From the sequence record NC_043427.1: a stretch of 24,893 bases of DNA; one strand, written 5' to 3'. The notes under the pieces are model-generated. The model did no database searches and was not told the DNA's origin. It saw only the letters and a program-made list of their open reading frames with translations. Below are positions 14,126-24,893 of this stretch, one piece after another; the first letter of the stretch is position 1, and every line of letters begins with the position of its first letter. The translations under genes were made by a program, and so were the position numbers.

Positions 14126-14181
14126 GGTTTTGGCACATACAGACTAAGTAGTAAGGTTTATTACCCCCCGTGCCAAAACTG
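14125..14181. repeat. Inverted repeat flanking the recombinase promoter
   Basis: GTTTTGGCAC 14127-14136 and GTGCCAAAAC 14170-14179 with a 33-nt spacer that contains the TATA-like AAGGTTTATTA. Confidence 0.85.
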
Positions 14182-21342: not shown

Positions 21343-21627
21343 GTGGAAGGCTTGGAAAGGGATGTCTTCTGTGTTGTGGCTGGTAAGGGCTATCAGGGGA
21401 CATCTGTAGTTGGGGCTACTATCGTGTGCTATAGGACGTATGATGACACAAAGCAGATAACTATCAAGGCTACTAAGGCTGGGAGGACAATGGGGGGTAG
21501 GAGTGTCTGGAGAATGTGGATTGAGGGAAGACCCGAGACCGAGAACACAGTATTTATTAGAAGGGCAACAGAGGAGGAGCTTAGGAGGATGGCACATCTC
21601 CTATTCGGGCACATGGTGCCAAAGTGA
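21343..21627 (+). CDS. Hypothetical protein (94 aa)
   Basis: ORF in the co-oriented accessory cluster. Confidence 0.6.
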   Translation: MEGLERDVFCVVAGKGYQGTSVVGATIVCYRTYDDTKQITIKATKAGRTMGGRSVWRMWIEGRPETENTVFIRRATEEELRRMAHLLFGHMVPK

Positions 21628-22120: not shown

Positions 22121-22456
22121 ATGGTTAAGGTCTATGCCATTGACAGGGATGGAACTCTTGAGACTGGAGAGCCTCCAGGTCCTCTCAAGATATGCCAAGT
22201 CCTCAAGCTCCTCAAGCAAGGACACATCCTCTACTCCTATGGAAATTACAAGCTGATTGAGGAGCTGCCCATTCCCTATGCCCCAGGGAGGGACAAATGG
22301 CAGAGGCTCAAGTGGATAATGGAGAGGCATCCTGATGCAGAGGAGTACATCTATATTGATGATGTGGACCAAAAGATGCCTGGATGGAAGTGGCTTAAAC
22401 CCGAGGAGGCAGCAAGGATGATAGGACCGTGCCCCCATGAGGAGAGGGCCCTATGA
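22121..22456 (+). CDS. Minimal capless HAD-superfamily phosphatase
   Basis: Motif I AIDRDGTL, motif II LYSYG, motif III Lys (DKWQRL), motif IV YIDD. Confidence 0.75.
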   Translation: MVKVYAIDRDGTLETGEPPGPLKICQVLKLLKQGHILYSYGNYKLIEELPIPYAPGRDKWQRLKWIMERHPDAEEYIYIDDVDQKMPGWKWLKPEEAARMIGPCPHEERAL

Positions 22457-22690
22457 GGAGCGGGGAGCAATGACTGGGGAGCCCCACCTGAGGGGTGTGT
22501 GCCAAAACCTCTCCTATAATAAAAATCTCTCCTTAGTAGGCTCGGGAAATGAGAAGAATAACCCCCCGGGATTGGGAGGCCCAAAGGAGAAACCATCAAA
22601 GGGGAAATGGCACACAGGACCATAATTCCAACTCTACATAGTCTAGGGAGTATCCTTAACTGAAGGCCTCTTCCTCATTGTTTAGAGGGG

Positions 22691-22718
22691 GTTTTGGCAC
22701 AGACACAAGTGCCAAAAC
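22691..22718. repeat. Perfect 10-bp inverted repeat with 8-nt spacer (recombinase core-site-like)
   Basis: GTTTTGGCAC-AGACACAA-GTGCCAAAAC; the same arm occurs at 14127, 14170 and 22499. Confidence 0.9.
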
Positions 22719-22759
22719 TGTGCCAGCATCATTGTCCATATGAAAAGGTCATCAGATAA

Positions 22760-22839
22760 TGGGGGTCCCAATCCGCTTGCTTATGGTATCCCAGCCATGA
22801 GGCTCATGGTATCCCAACTTCATCAGTCATGGTATCCCA
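22760..22839 (+). repeat. Iteron-like direct repeats with 23-bp period
   Basis: ATGGTATCCCA at 22783, 22806 and 22829; a degenerate copy ending TCCCA at 22770 is in register. Confidence 0.9.
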
Positions 22840-22860
22840 CATTATCATTACTATGTTTCA

Positions 22861-22905
22861 AAGCCCTCTTTCAAACATCATGAATCATTGATGTGAATAG
22901 GGCTT
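22861..22905. repeat. Imperfect hairpin
   Basis: AAGCCCT/AGGGCTT, TTC/GAA and ACATCA/TGATGT stems around an 8-nt loop. Confidence 0.7.
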
Positions 22906-23034
22906 CGGCCTGTGCCAATTTGCAAGTTTTGAGTTAATAGGCATAAGAGTTTAGCTTATAGATGGTACAGAAGAGTTGTGTCTTTAAGCCAATCACCTTA
23001 CCAATTAAGGTATGTTTCCCAGCATACTCTAGCC

Positions 23035-23117
23035 TACCATCAAGTATGCTTTTTTCCATTCACTTAGAATACCCGAAGCTTACCATTCAGTATGCATAGT
23101 AATACCATCAAGCATAC
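23035..23117 (+). repeat. Dispersed TACCAT-containing repeats upstream of the wHTH/RHH cluster
   Basis: TACCATCAAGTATGC (23035), TACCATTCAGTATGC (23081), TACCATCAAGCATAC (23103). Confidence 0.7.
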
Positions 23118-23148
23118 CATCATGGATGCTAGGTGGATATATCGGGGT

Positions 23149-23496
23149 ATGCTCCTTAAAAGTGCGGTCTCCACAAGAAACAATATCGGTCGGAGGGGTT
23201 TGGTGGTGGATGAGGAATCATTCACCACAATCTTAAGGAGGCTTCATATGCCAGGATACCTCAAGGCTCTGCTGTACATCGCATATAAGTCTAAGAAGAC
23301 GGAGAACGGGGTTGTGCAGCTTCCGTTAGTGCTGAGAAGAAGCAAGTACCCGTTTAACCGCAACGACATCTATAGGCTTGAGTATGAGGGGATGATTGCT
23401 ATGGTTAAGGAAGAGAATAGGATAGTCGTTTCAATGCTTGCTAAGGGCTGGGAGGAGCTCAAGGCTTTAAGAGAAATCTTGGAGGTGGTCTCATGA
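23149..23496 (+). CDS. Winged-helix DNA-binding protein
   Basis: DIYRLEYEGMIAMV...VSMLAKGWEEL; ATG 23149 follows GGGGT (upstream ATGs are possible). Confidence 0.7.
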   Translation: MLLKSAVSTRNNIGRRGLVVDEESFTTILRRLHMPGYLKALLYIAYKSKKTENGVVQLPLVLRRSKYPFNRNDIYRLEYEGMIAMVKEENRIVVSMLAKGWEELKALREILEVVS

Positions 23497-23777
23497 AGGT
23501 GATTCAGACAAAGTTGGGTGAGGAGGAGTATAAGGTTCTAAAGGAGATTGCAGAGGCTCAAGGAGTCAGCATGTACGAGCTCGTTAGAAGGATAGTGTTG
23601 AAGGAGCTTGCAAAGATGGGGAAGGTAAAGCGGGATAAGATTAACAGTCAAGACAGGCTAGAGGAGCTTGAACATAGGGTATCAATGTTGGAGGAGCGAG
23701 TTAAGAGAATCGAGACGGATATCAAAGAAATCAAGCAACGACTCCAGAGGAACTCGATTGATAGGTGGGTGAGATAA
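23493..23777 (+). CDS. RHH protein with C-terminal leucine zipper
   Basis: KVIQTKLGEEEYKVLKEIAEAQGVSMYELVRRIV and LEELEHRVSMLEERVKRIE. Confidence 0.85.
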   Translation: MKVIQTKLGEEEYKVLKEIAEAQGVSMYELVRRIVLKELAKMGKVKRDKINSQDRLEELEHRVSMLEERVKRIETDIKEIKQRLQRNSIDRWVR

Positions 23778-24136
23778 TGAACAAGATAGACAAGGATATA
23801 CTTGAGGCCGTGATGAAGATGACAAACCAGAGGCGTGATGTTAAGATAACGAAGGATGAGCTGTTTGTTTACATGTACCTGAGCATGAAGAGGAATGGCT
23901 TGAAACCATATAGCTTCGAGACGATAGCCAGGAGACTTAGAATCCTCGTTAGAAAGGGCTACTTTACCGTGAAATACGTTGAAGAGAAGAAAGGCAATCT
24001 GAAGTGGAGAAGAGCATACTACATTCCACGAAGGCTAACAATAGCTGCAAAGCTGAAGGCAGAGCAGTTAAGGTCTGCTACTCTAACAGTTTATGGGGTT
24101 AAAGTTGGAGCCAGCAGTAACAGCAGCGAGCGATGA
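23777..24136 (+). CDS. Winged-helix DNA-binding protein
   Basis: SFETIARRLRILVRKGYFTV recognition helix and wing; TAATG overlap. Confidence 0.75.
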   Translation: MNKIDKDILEAVMKMTNQRRDVKITKDELFVYMYLSMKRNGLKPYSFETIARRLRILVRKGYFTVKYVEEKKGNLKWRRAYYIPRRLTIAAKLKAEQLRSATLTVYGVKVGASSNSSER

Positions 24137-24398
24137 AGAGCTAAAACAGAGAATTATGAAGGTCTTGCAGAACGGGAGCAAGACTCTTGTCGAGGTTCAT
24201 TTTTTAGTTGAGAAGACTGGCTTCGTTGTTTCTTACAGGCGTCTCAAGCTGGTTGTTGACGAGATGGTTCAATCTGGGCTTATAGAAAAAATGAGGGACG
24301 GAAAAAAGGTAAAGTATAAGATAAAAGAAGGGCAGCATAAGATATGGCTCGAATACCCCTGGAGAGGTGAGGAAGAGTGGGCAAGTATGCGACTCTAA
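24093..24398 (+). CDS. Winged-helix DNA-binding protein
   Basis: RIMKVLQNGSKTLVEV...LKLVVDEMVQSGLIEKMRDGKKVKYKI. Confidence 0.8.
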   Translation: MGLKLEPAVTAASDEELKQRIMKVLQNGSKTLVEVHFLVEKTGFVVSYRRLKLVVDEMVQSGLIEKMRDGKKVKYKIKEGQHKIWLEYPWRGEEEWASMRL

Positions 24399-24577
24399 CA
24401 CAGGACCTTCCCGAGGAGTACAGGAAGGCTCACCCCATATGTGTGGCTAGTAAAGTGGCCAAAATGGGCTACGAGCCTGCAAGGGCTCCTAGGGACGTGA
24501 GGCAGAGAGCAGCCGAGGAGTGTATAAGGGAGGGCAAGCTGCACGGCATAGTGAAGCTGCTAAGCCCCTCGGTTTGA
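24377..24577 (+). CDS. Stand-alone His/Cys domain protein (paralog of the 3741 N-terminus)
   Basis: DLPEEYRKAHPICVASKVAKMGYE...RAAEECIREGKLHGIV; GAGGTGAGG RBS. Confidence 0.8.
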   Translation: MGKYATLTQDLPEEYRKAHPICVASKVAKMGYEPARAPRDVRQRAAEECIREGKLHGIVKLLSPSV

Positions 24578-24582
24578 AGGCC

Positions 24583-24804
24583 CTAGAACCTATACCTCCT
24601 AATTATTTTTTCAATGTCGCTTACACTGAACTTCTTCTTCTTGTTTGACATCAAATACTGAATTTGAAGGAATCTCAGTACTCTTACAACCTTTCCAATT
24701 GGATGCTTTAAGAGGATATCTGTCATCTTGTCTGCATCATCCTCTCCCAACCCTAGCTCGATGAGAGTCCTTCTTATCATATCTCTGAATTCTTTCCGCT
24801 CCAC
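24583..24804 (-). CDS. Only credible reverse-strand gene; helical, basic protein (73 aa)
   Basis: AGGTAGGTGA RBS on the minus strand; local purine skew is inverted; convergent with 24377-24577. Confidence 0.8.
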   Translation of the reverse strand: MERKEFRDMIRRTLIELGLGEDDADKMTDILLKHPIGKVVRVLRFLQIQYLMSNKKKKFSVSDIEKIIRRYRF

Positions 24805-24850
24805 ATTATCACCTACCTGTAAAGTTGTTGGCTACTGCTAATTTGGGTTT

Positions 24851-24893
24851 CCCAGTCTCTCCCAGTCTCCCCCATTAATTCATATTCACCTAA
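24851..24893. repeat. Left arm and loop of the junction-spanning stem-loop, plus a CCCAGTCTC tandem repeat
   Basis: 24861-24877 pairs with 24891-24893 plus 1-14 when the window is circularised; CCCAGTCTC at 24851 and 24861. Confidence 0.8.

Follow-up and report, generated by a model that had tools for sequence, protein, structure and literature searches.

How a single-stranded DNA (ssDNA) genome is copied when it encodes no recognisable replication protein is the question raised by the non-coding control region of Aeropyrum coil-shaped virus (ACV, Spiraviridae), the largest known ssDNA virus and the sole known spiravirus, whose mode of replication has been a standing question since 2012. The window analysed is the complete genome (HE681887.1 / NC_043427.1, identical in sequence), a circular, plus-sense ssDNA of 24,893 nucleotides (nt). 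Genes for a DNA polymerase, an RNA polymerase or a rolling-circle Rep are absent from ACV (ICTV profile; PMC7416610). None of its large open reading frames (ORFs) matched a replication family in Pfam or a Rep family in PHROGs, and because no replication protein is recognisable a host-dependent origin is expected.

The answer tentatively favoured here is that the control region would be an origin on the replicative form combined with autoregulation of the adjacent ORF52-56 operon; a purely transcriptional operator is nearly as likely. Both readings concern three short direct repeats, or iterons, which sequence comparison supports as functional cis-elements under strong purifying selection.

The preliminary description of this DNA had located the repeats in the main non-coding region, and rightly so, as this is the largest annotated gap (336 nt) and the annotation leaves ACV without other large non-coding regions. 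The region is probably longer than annotated:

22457-23202, no strand assigned: control region at its probable full extent, about 746 nt, delimited by codon-usage scores, alignment of the ORF52 homologue and absence of ORF51 from a related contig

This extent follows from the non-coding scores of ORF50, ORF51 and the 5' codons of ORF52, together with the evidence of the related contig presented below. On a codon-usage score trained on long ACV genes, ORF50 obtains -0.14, ORF51 -0.02 and the first 36 codons of ORF52 -0.13 bits/codon; the remainder of ORF52 (from 23203) and ORF53-57 obtain +0.42 to +0.55 bits/codon. The related contig, compared over the aligned region, has no counterpart of ORF51. 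By their codon statistics ORF50 (22470-22625) and ORF51 (22962-23099) are probably doubtful genes, and the annotated 5' part of ORF52 (23092-23202, some 36-37 codons) is probably not coding.

An invariant iteron array

The left half of the control region contains the following elements:

22783-22849, plus strand: three exact iterons ATGGTATCCCA with a 23-nt period and an unchanging tail CATTATCATT, giving an invariant run at 22829-22849
22758-22778, plus strand: 21-nt block AATGGGGGTCCCAATCCGCTT, which includes a degenerate iteron at 22760-22770, invariant between ACV and its relative
22716-22747, plus strand: 32-nt block AACTGTGCCAGCATCATTGTCCATATGAAAAG with a CTGTGCCA box and a dyad TCCATATGAAA (22735-22745) resembling a small origin recognition box (ORB), identical in ACV and its relative

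The iterons start at 22783, 22806 and 22829, as had been described, are exact and occur nowhere else in the genome, in which 0.01 copies of the 11-mer are expected by chance; Tandem Repeats Finder (TRF) also gives a period of 23. The fourth, degenerate copy proposed upstream is present as well, in register and with 7 of 11 bases retained (TGGGGGTCCCA).

The selection acting on these sites is apparent from comparison with a 1,712-nt metagenome contig of the European Nucleotide Archive (ENA; ERZ23495249, REYS20-1_SAMN12239311 scaffold_86987; here L004), which by its sequence appears to be the first relative of the sole known spiravirus. The contig is syntenic with ACV 22689-24400 and consists of 602 nt of non-coding DNA followed by homologues of ORF52, ORF53, ORF54 and ORF55. 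Its genes have diverged considerably: the coding DNA matches that of ACV at 60% of positions and in no 159-column window at more than 73%, and at the amino-acid level ORF52 is 40% and ORF54 58% identical. The left block (22691-22849) is 86% identical (137/159) and thus better conserved than any part of the neighbouring genes, with exact runs of 32 (the longest), 21, 20 and 21 nt. The iterons of L004 (positions 95, 118 and 141) are the same 11-mers with the same period, all 33 iteron bases being identical, and the fourth copy is again TGGGGGTCCCA, in register too, whereas the spacers between iterons agree at 15 of 24 positions (counted by eye on the alignment). Diverged spacers between invariant iterons constitute the footprint of purifying selection on the sites and not of a recent block transfer.

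The opposed array and an ORB4-like element

Downstream of the iterons the same core recurs in the opposite orientation, followed by promoter-like boxes and by a sequence resembling an Orc1-binding site of the host:

22910-22926, plus strand: conserved box CTGTGCCA(A/T)TT(T/A)GCAAG, with 76% identity over the 34 alignment columns that hold it
22917-23016, no strand assigned: AT-rich centre, 33% GC, with one forward ATGGTA at 22962
23017-23130, minus strand: right array, a repeat family with ATGGTA at 23035, 23081, 23103 and 23115 in (G/T)CATACCAT(C/T)AAG(T/C)ATGC units
23136-23161, plus strand: TATA-like boxes GGATATATC and CTTAAAAG, read from the sequence
23168-23199, plus strand: split copy of host ORB4 with 21 of its 22 bases, formed by TCTCCACAAGAAAC (13/14), a 10-nt insert and GGAGGGGT (8/8)

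Eight of the 17 ATGGTA sites of the genome lie within 22783-23120, four forward and then four reverse (binomial probability of such clustering in the 746-nt region, 1e-8). The forward copies are those of the three iterons and the one at 22962. The units of the right array include TACCATCAAGTATGC, and the array also holds an inverted repeat, AGCATACT/AGTATGCT, followed by T6 (23050-23055). In L004 the zone of reverse repeats is 56% identical to that of ACV, and the non-coding part carries 13 ATGGTA cores, of which at least 8 are reverse. Reverse cores are spaced by 46, 22 and 12 nt in ACV and by 12, 23, 46, 34, 23, 13 and 65 nt in L004, which indicates that both arrays have in common a phasing of roughly 11.5/23 nt (11.5/23/46 in the right array). 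The reversal of the core ATGGTA(T) upstream of the operon means that two opposed arrays flank a variable AT-rich centre. To judge from their sequences, the arrays are very probably real, selected protein-binding sites.

An AT-rich stretch near 22918-22990 had been listed among the elements of the region. It is present, but as the third-lowest 100-nt window of a genome with a mean GC of 46.7% it is not distinctive. Its sequence is not conserved (35% identity), L004 also having a variable segment at this position; such freedom to vary, as in unwinding elements, is counted in favour of an origin. Some 10-25 nt separate the end of the right array from the TATA-like boxes at 23136-23161, which, read against the upstream sequences of other ACV genes (TATA at about -44, GGTG/GGAGG at about -10), are the probable promoter of ORF52-56.

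At Ori1 of Aeropyrum pernix, Orc1 binds four ORB elements, of which ORB1 and ORB4 have CTCCACAGGAAACGGAGGG(G) in common (PMC8287685 supplement); the ORB4 22-mer TCTCCACAGGAAACGGAGGGGT was used as a binding substrate (PMC5376975; also PMC8287685 supplement), and the purified A. pernix Orc1 and its binding assays have been published (PMC8287685). The host ORB sequences considered here rest on these two papers. The dyad part of the ACV copy (23168-23181) is the sole match in the genome with at most one mismatch; about 0.007 such matches are expected per genome, and one is present in about 1% of Markov-simulated genomes. At the aligned position L004 has CTCCACTGGAAGGAGGGGGGT, an ORB-like sequence in which dyad and G-string are contiguous. 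The polarity of the ACV element is that of ORB3 and ORB4 at host Ori1, with the dyad beside AT-rich DNA and the G-string away from it. A weaker second dyad, TCCATATGAAA, lies at 22735 inside the 32-nt invariant block, and the pattern TCCANNNGAAA, relaxed after the sites had been seen, has three matches in the genome, two of them in the control region. A degenerate ORB consensus is not enriched across the ACV genome. The two ORB-like dyads share the plus strand, a G-string accompanies one of them only, and they do not form an inverted flanking pair. A scan of genome contigs with the ORB1/ORB4 20-mer matched a Thermoplasmata metagenome-assembled genome only, A. pernix not being among the matches. 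The authors of another Aeropyrum virus, AGV1, sought ORBs in it and found none. As a whole, the sequence supports an origin-like layout, with opposed arrays, a variable AT-rich centre, genes for DNA-binding proteins and a near-ORB4 element.

Candidate binders and secondary structures

The genes downstream of the control region, an operon of winged helix-turn-helix (wHTH) and ribbon-helix-helix (RHH) proteins at 23149-24398 that had been noted and agrees with the annotation, encode the candidate binders of the arrays:

23203-23496, plus strand: ORF52 with a revised start, a winged helix with a C-terminal helix (PadR / AF1382 / AspA / TubR-like), from codon usage, the homologue and a structure model (predicted local distance difference test, pLDDT, 90)
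23493-24398, plus strand: ORF53 (RHH and coiled coil), ORF54 (winged helix) and ORF55 (wHTH), candidate array binders, from annotation, models and synteny with L004

Among 1.8 billion representative proteins the only homologue of ORF52 is the one encoded by L004 (P0003, 93 aa, 43% identity), which aligns to residues 52-130 and starts where ACV has GTG 23203, a codon preceded by GGAGGGG. The start of ORF52 is most likely this GTG, giving a protein of about 97 aa. Modelled from 23203 together with P0003, ORF52 is a winged helix with a C-terminal helix (pLDDT 90) whose nearest structures in Foldseek are PadR-like regulators, AF1382, the pNOB8 centromere binder AspA and TubR. The model of ORF54 (pLDDT 83) has a winged helix, a long wing and a C-terminal helix; its top fold matches, all with similar TM-scores of about 0.55-0.6, are winged helices of yeast and fly Cdc6, DnaD-N, RTP, archaeal Orc1/Cdc6 proteins including A. 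pernix ORC1, and PadR proteins.

These proteins had been put forward as candidate initiators of the RepA or Cdc6/Orc1 type. The winged helix of ORF54 does match Cdc6/Orc1, as well as it matches PadR, and this is counted in favour of an origin, but ORF52-55 are too small (80-119 aa) and, being single-domain, do not correspond to such initiators; domain searches, with structure models of ORF52 and ORF54, revealed no ATPase domain and no second winged helix. They look like PadR/AspA/RTP-type DNA binders and not like RepA or Orc1/Cdc6 initiators, and they are plausible site-specific binders of the arrays.

Searches for further relatives returned little. In IMG/VR the iteron pattern, ORF52, an ORF54 alignment and a 30-nt conserved block recovered ACV itself only, and word-index protein searches recovered only ACV for ORF52 and ORF11, and ACV and one further protein (P0005) for ORF54. 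The other L004 proteins were found on no further contig, and a leftward extension of the relative was not obtained. A metagenome scan with an iteron pair yielded three tandem arrays, set aside as unrelated. The two contigs that carry P0005 (L008, JGI 3300023440 Ga0256750_1015146, gene at 2572-2859; and L009) were rejected as relatives, the ORF54-like gene being all that they have in common with ACV. This gene (56% identity) retains the recognition helix KPYSFETIARRLR in a different context, beside a 244-aa RHH/NikA-like protein and without ATGGTATCCCA sites, from which it follows that the ORF54 family extends beyond spiravirus-like elements. An unrelated metagenome contig (PVBE010260084.1, L006) has at 780-1210 two inverted arrays of about 8-10 GGTGGTATCCCAAAT(T/G)T repeats round an AT-rich stretch, with a TGGTATCCCA core in common with ACV, and represents a textbook iteron-type origin or operator of another mobile element.

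Two secondary structures and a possible second promoter complete the control region:

22861-22905, plus strand: imperfect 16-bp hairpin specific to ACV (free energy -10.7 kcal/mol, z = -4.0), with no equivalent in L004
22691-22718, no strand assigned: palindrome GTTTTGGCAC-N8-GTGCCAAAAC, an inverted repeat (z = -2.5 in ACV)
22499-22533, plus strand: GTGCCAAAAC box and then TATA-like CTATAATAAAAATC flanked by the direct repeat AAAA(C/T)CTCTCCT, from sequence repeats

Both structures occur as had been stated, the hairpin with its 16 bp in three segments and the palindrome with 10-bp arms and an 8-nt spacer. The energy and z-score of the hairpin refer to 37 °C and to shuffled sequences, and when the 60-nt windows of the ACV genome are ranked by stability at 37 °C both structures fall in the top five. 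The suggestion that the hairpin could be a complementary-strand origin on ssDNA was not borne out by comparison: the structure is not conserved (52% identity over the segment) and, on a rough nearest-neighbour estimate, melting temperatures of about 78 °C for the palindrome and about 58 °C for the outer 7-bp stem of the hairpin alone fall below the 90-95 °C at which the hyperthermophilic archaeal host grows (PMC7416610). The lack of structural conservation and the low stem stability leave this role without comparative support.

The palindrome is better read, from its sequence, as two operator or recombinase half-sites. The family (T)GTGCCA(AAAC), to which both arms belong, has six copies in the control region (P = 3e-6). 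The pair GTTTTGGCAC / GTGCCAAAAC recurs inverted at 14127-14136 / 14170-14179, 33 nt apart, bracketing a TATA-like GTTTATTA just upstream of the recombinase gene ORF33. The family resembles operators of transcription factors, the HTH domain of the recombinase being a possible binder, and the recurrence of the arms suggests that one regulator, perhaps this same domain, acts at several loci. A looser pair of palindrome arms lies at 21588-21625.

In the left part of the region, TATA-like ATAATAAAAAT lies between the two AAAA(C/T)CTCTCCT copies (22504-22533), and 22499-22533 is a possible promoter firing into the non-coding region. The left edge itself carries a tandem direct repeat, CCCCATGAGGAGAGGG / CCCTATGAGGAGCGGG (22433-22464). 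A long-range inverted repeat, 22495-22516 / 22683-22704, was dropped as a structure (z = -1.06 against shuffles for the folding of 22457-22730), and no Rfam family was matched. A second small non-coding region, 24805-24893 and on to base 1, separates ORF57, the only minus-strand gene, from ORF1; it carries 2.5 copies of TCCCAGTCTC and a hairpin of -12.9 kcal/mol, and it adjoins the most AT-rich 100 nt of the genome (24600-24700, 31% GC). This second region probably serves as a divergent promoter and is also an alternative candidate for the origin.

Origin, operator or other signal

In the favoured reading, 22457-23202 would be the cis-acting region of the double-stranded replicative form of ACV. 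Its two opposed arrays of the one core ATGGTA(T), three iterons and a variant on the left and four reverse copies on the right (at least eight in L004), would be bound cooperatively by one or more of the small wHTH/RHH proteins ORF52-55, and the resulting nucleoprotein complex would bracket the fast-evolving AT-rich centre, where the DNA may be unwound. The complex would mark the replication origin, and the ORB4-like element on its right flank would recruit host Orc1-1 for loading of the MCM helicase of the host. The ORF52-56 promoter, which the complex overlaps, would at the same time be repressed or tuned by it, as in the replicator-initiator organisation of cellular ori-cdc6 loci and of iteron plasmids. 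This reading is preferred because opposed arrays surround a variable AT-rich centre, an ORB4-like site is present, the genome has no second non-coding region of such size, and the virus must rely on the host replisome. Its most specific form is doubtful, namely that ACV replicates a double-stranded form by means of the host initiator, a captured or mimicked ORB4 recruiting Orc1-1 and MCM while the iteron arrays of the virus license or time the process.

The known systems that the region resembles do so in part. A period of 22-23 bp is typical of iteron plasmids, and the origins of this type (R6K, pPS10, RK2, F and P1, with RepA/pi/TrfA) are like ACV in having direct repeats of about 22-23-bp period, or about two helical turns, beside an AT-rich stretch and the promoter of a DNA-binding gene, an arrangement in which the sites could serve initiation and autoregulation alike. 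ACV differs from them in its core of 11 nt versus 17-22 nt, its second, inverted array, its archaeal host and the absence of a Rep_3/RepA two-domain initiator (Pfam, PHROGs and models). The likeness to plasmid replicons drawn in the preliminary description holds for the selected iterons and the origin-like layout, but not for a Rep-type initiator; the AT-rich tract is real but not distinctive. Archaeal replicator-initiator units (A. pernix Ori1, Sulfolobus oriC1-3) are matched by the opposed repeats round an AT-rich centre upstream of winged-helix genes and by one element that is nearly host ORB4 with the polarity of ORB3/ORB4. Unlike these units, ACV has no orc1/cdc6 or whiP gene and a single, split ORB-like site, its dominant repeats ATGGTATCCCA are unrelated to ORB and its genome is packaged as ssDNA. 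In this lineage an origin can be specified by WhiP, a tandem winged-helix protein that lacks an AAA+ domain (PMC3607249), whereas the winged-helix proteins of ACV are single-domain and of about 100 aa. From rolling-circle origins of HUH Rep proteins ACV differs in lacking an HUH Rep and in the hairpin after its iterons, which is not conserved.

Several observations weigh against an origin at this locus. All comparisons with ACV rest on one truncated relative, in which there is no significant hairpin after the iterons (z = -0.55) and in which two non-compensatory changes, altering both arms, break the dyad of the palindrome (z = +0.88). The 100-nt windows at 24600 and 13964 have a GC content equal to or below that of the AT-rich centre. 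GC skew, positive in nearly every 500-nt window round the circle (about +0.1 to +0.4), falls to about zero or below within 22200-23100 only, and the cumulative curve has a plateau at the control region and no turning point; over the whole ACV circle it points to neither an origin nor a terminus. A strong ORB-like site occurs only once: it has a 10-nt insert without parallel in host ORBs, the G-string is at the same time the Shine-Dalgarno sequence for ORF52 (GTG 23203), and the dyad, located roughly where transcription is predicted to start, would suit an operator just as well. Lastly, no protein of initiator size is encoded next to the control region.

Control of transcription only, nearly as likely as an origin with autoregulation, is the strongest rival. 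The arrays, the GTGCCAAAAC boxes and the ORB-like dyad would be operators for viral wHTH/RHH regulators that switch the ORF52-56 operon, and perhaps the promoter near 22513-22527, in chronic infection, replication starting elsewhere or independently of these sites. In explaining the right array, about 10-25 nt upstream of the TATA-like boxes, and the ORB-like dyad at the predicted start it equals the origin reading; round the TATA-like box upstream of ORF33 the GTGCCAAAAC pair has classic operator geometry, and the modelled folds of ORF52 and ORF54 are PadR/MarR-like. Precedents exist in viruses of hyperthermophilic archaea. In SSV1 the RHH protein F55 binds an 11-nt sequence tandemly repeated in several promoters, and AvtR and SvtR form oligomers that extend over about 100 bp (PMC5569661, PMC9608457); the ACV arrays are similar, with a tandem 11-nt site and RHH and wHTH regulators nearby, and in the case of F55 such sites are purely transcriptional, a further point against an origin. 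However, the F55 sites overlap known starts and the transcription factor B recognition element (BRE)/TATA, whereas the left iterons of ACV have no identified promoter and lie about 370 nt upstream of the ORF52 start (about 460 nt in L004), with no conserved TATA box or ORF found beside them. The left block is, moreover, perfectly conserved and far better so than the regulators, which have diverged to 40-58% identity, and this would be unusual for operators of fast-evolving repressors. Transcription control alone explains the distant, hyper-conserved left block less well and would leave ACV without any candidate origin.

The three remaining explanations are minor ones. It is improbable that the region acts in packaging or assembly as a signal of the single-stranded plus strand, its iterons and the invariant blocks beside them being read as ssDNA by capsid or terminal-appendage proteins and marking one of the two points at which the folded circular nucleoprotein filament turns. 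The Ff phage intergenic region combines both origins with a packaging signal, the packaging hairpin, and ACV resembles it as a circular ssDNA genome with one multifunctional non-coding region and a folded-back filament. The three exact iterons and the invariant blocks are all on the packaged strand, conservation of exact sequence rather than of a dyad suits recognition of ssDNA, and the virion is a circle folded as two intertwined halves with distinct ends (PMC7416610). On the other hand, Ff phages have conserved hairpins and an HUH nick site, whereas in ACV the hairpins are not conserved and there is no HUH Rep; no conserved secondary structure was found, nothing links any capsid protein to the motifs, and the reversal of the core in the right array points to recognition of double-stranded DNA.

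Less probable still is a recombination site in which the palindrome would be the core used by the ORF33 tyrosine recombinase for dimer resolution or integration, with the repeats some 65 nt away as arm-type sites. The cores of loxP, FRT and dif have inverted arms round a short spacer, a geometry found in the 10-bp arms and 8-nt spacer of ACV; the recombinase that ACV encodes has an N-terminal HTH, and the same arms occur upstream of its gene, as expected if this HTH autoregulates. Both arms are changed in L004 and the symmetry is broken, conservation of the iterons exceeds that of the presumed core, no tRNA-like attachment (att) segment was found, and integration is unmentioned in the ICTV profile (PMC7416610).

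Last in order of probability comes a centromere-like partition site for the replicative form, bound by ORF52 (AspA/TubR-like) or ORF53 (RHH), for which direct-repeat centromeres such as tubC and parC, with arrays of 10-12-bp repeats, and the Foldseek matches of ORF52 to AspA (pNOB8) and TubR would speak, as would a chronic, non-lytic infection (PMC7416610), but these matches are weak (E = 0.02-0.1) and equalled by PadR regulators, and no ParA, TubZ or ParM-type NTPase was detected in the ORFs scanned.

The analysis provides three invariant iterons, two invariant flanking blocks, an opposed array with the same core and a near-copy of a host Orc1 site, and it names four small proteins, ORF52-55, as candidate binders. 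If the rival of transcription control is right, the region would offer a small model system for how viral genes are controlled at 90 °C. If the origin reading holds true in its form with the host initiator, it would explain how a Rep-less ssDNA genome is copied and, as far as the searched literature shows, would be the first origin of an archaeal virus shown to act through an ORC-type initiator of the host.

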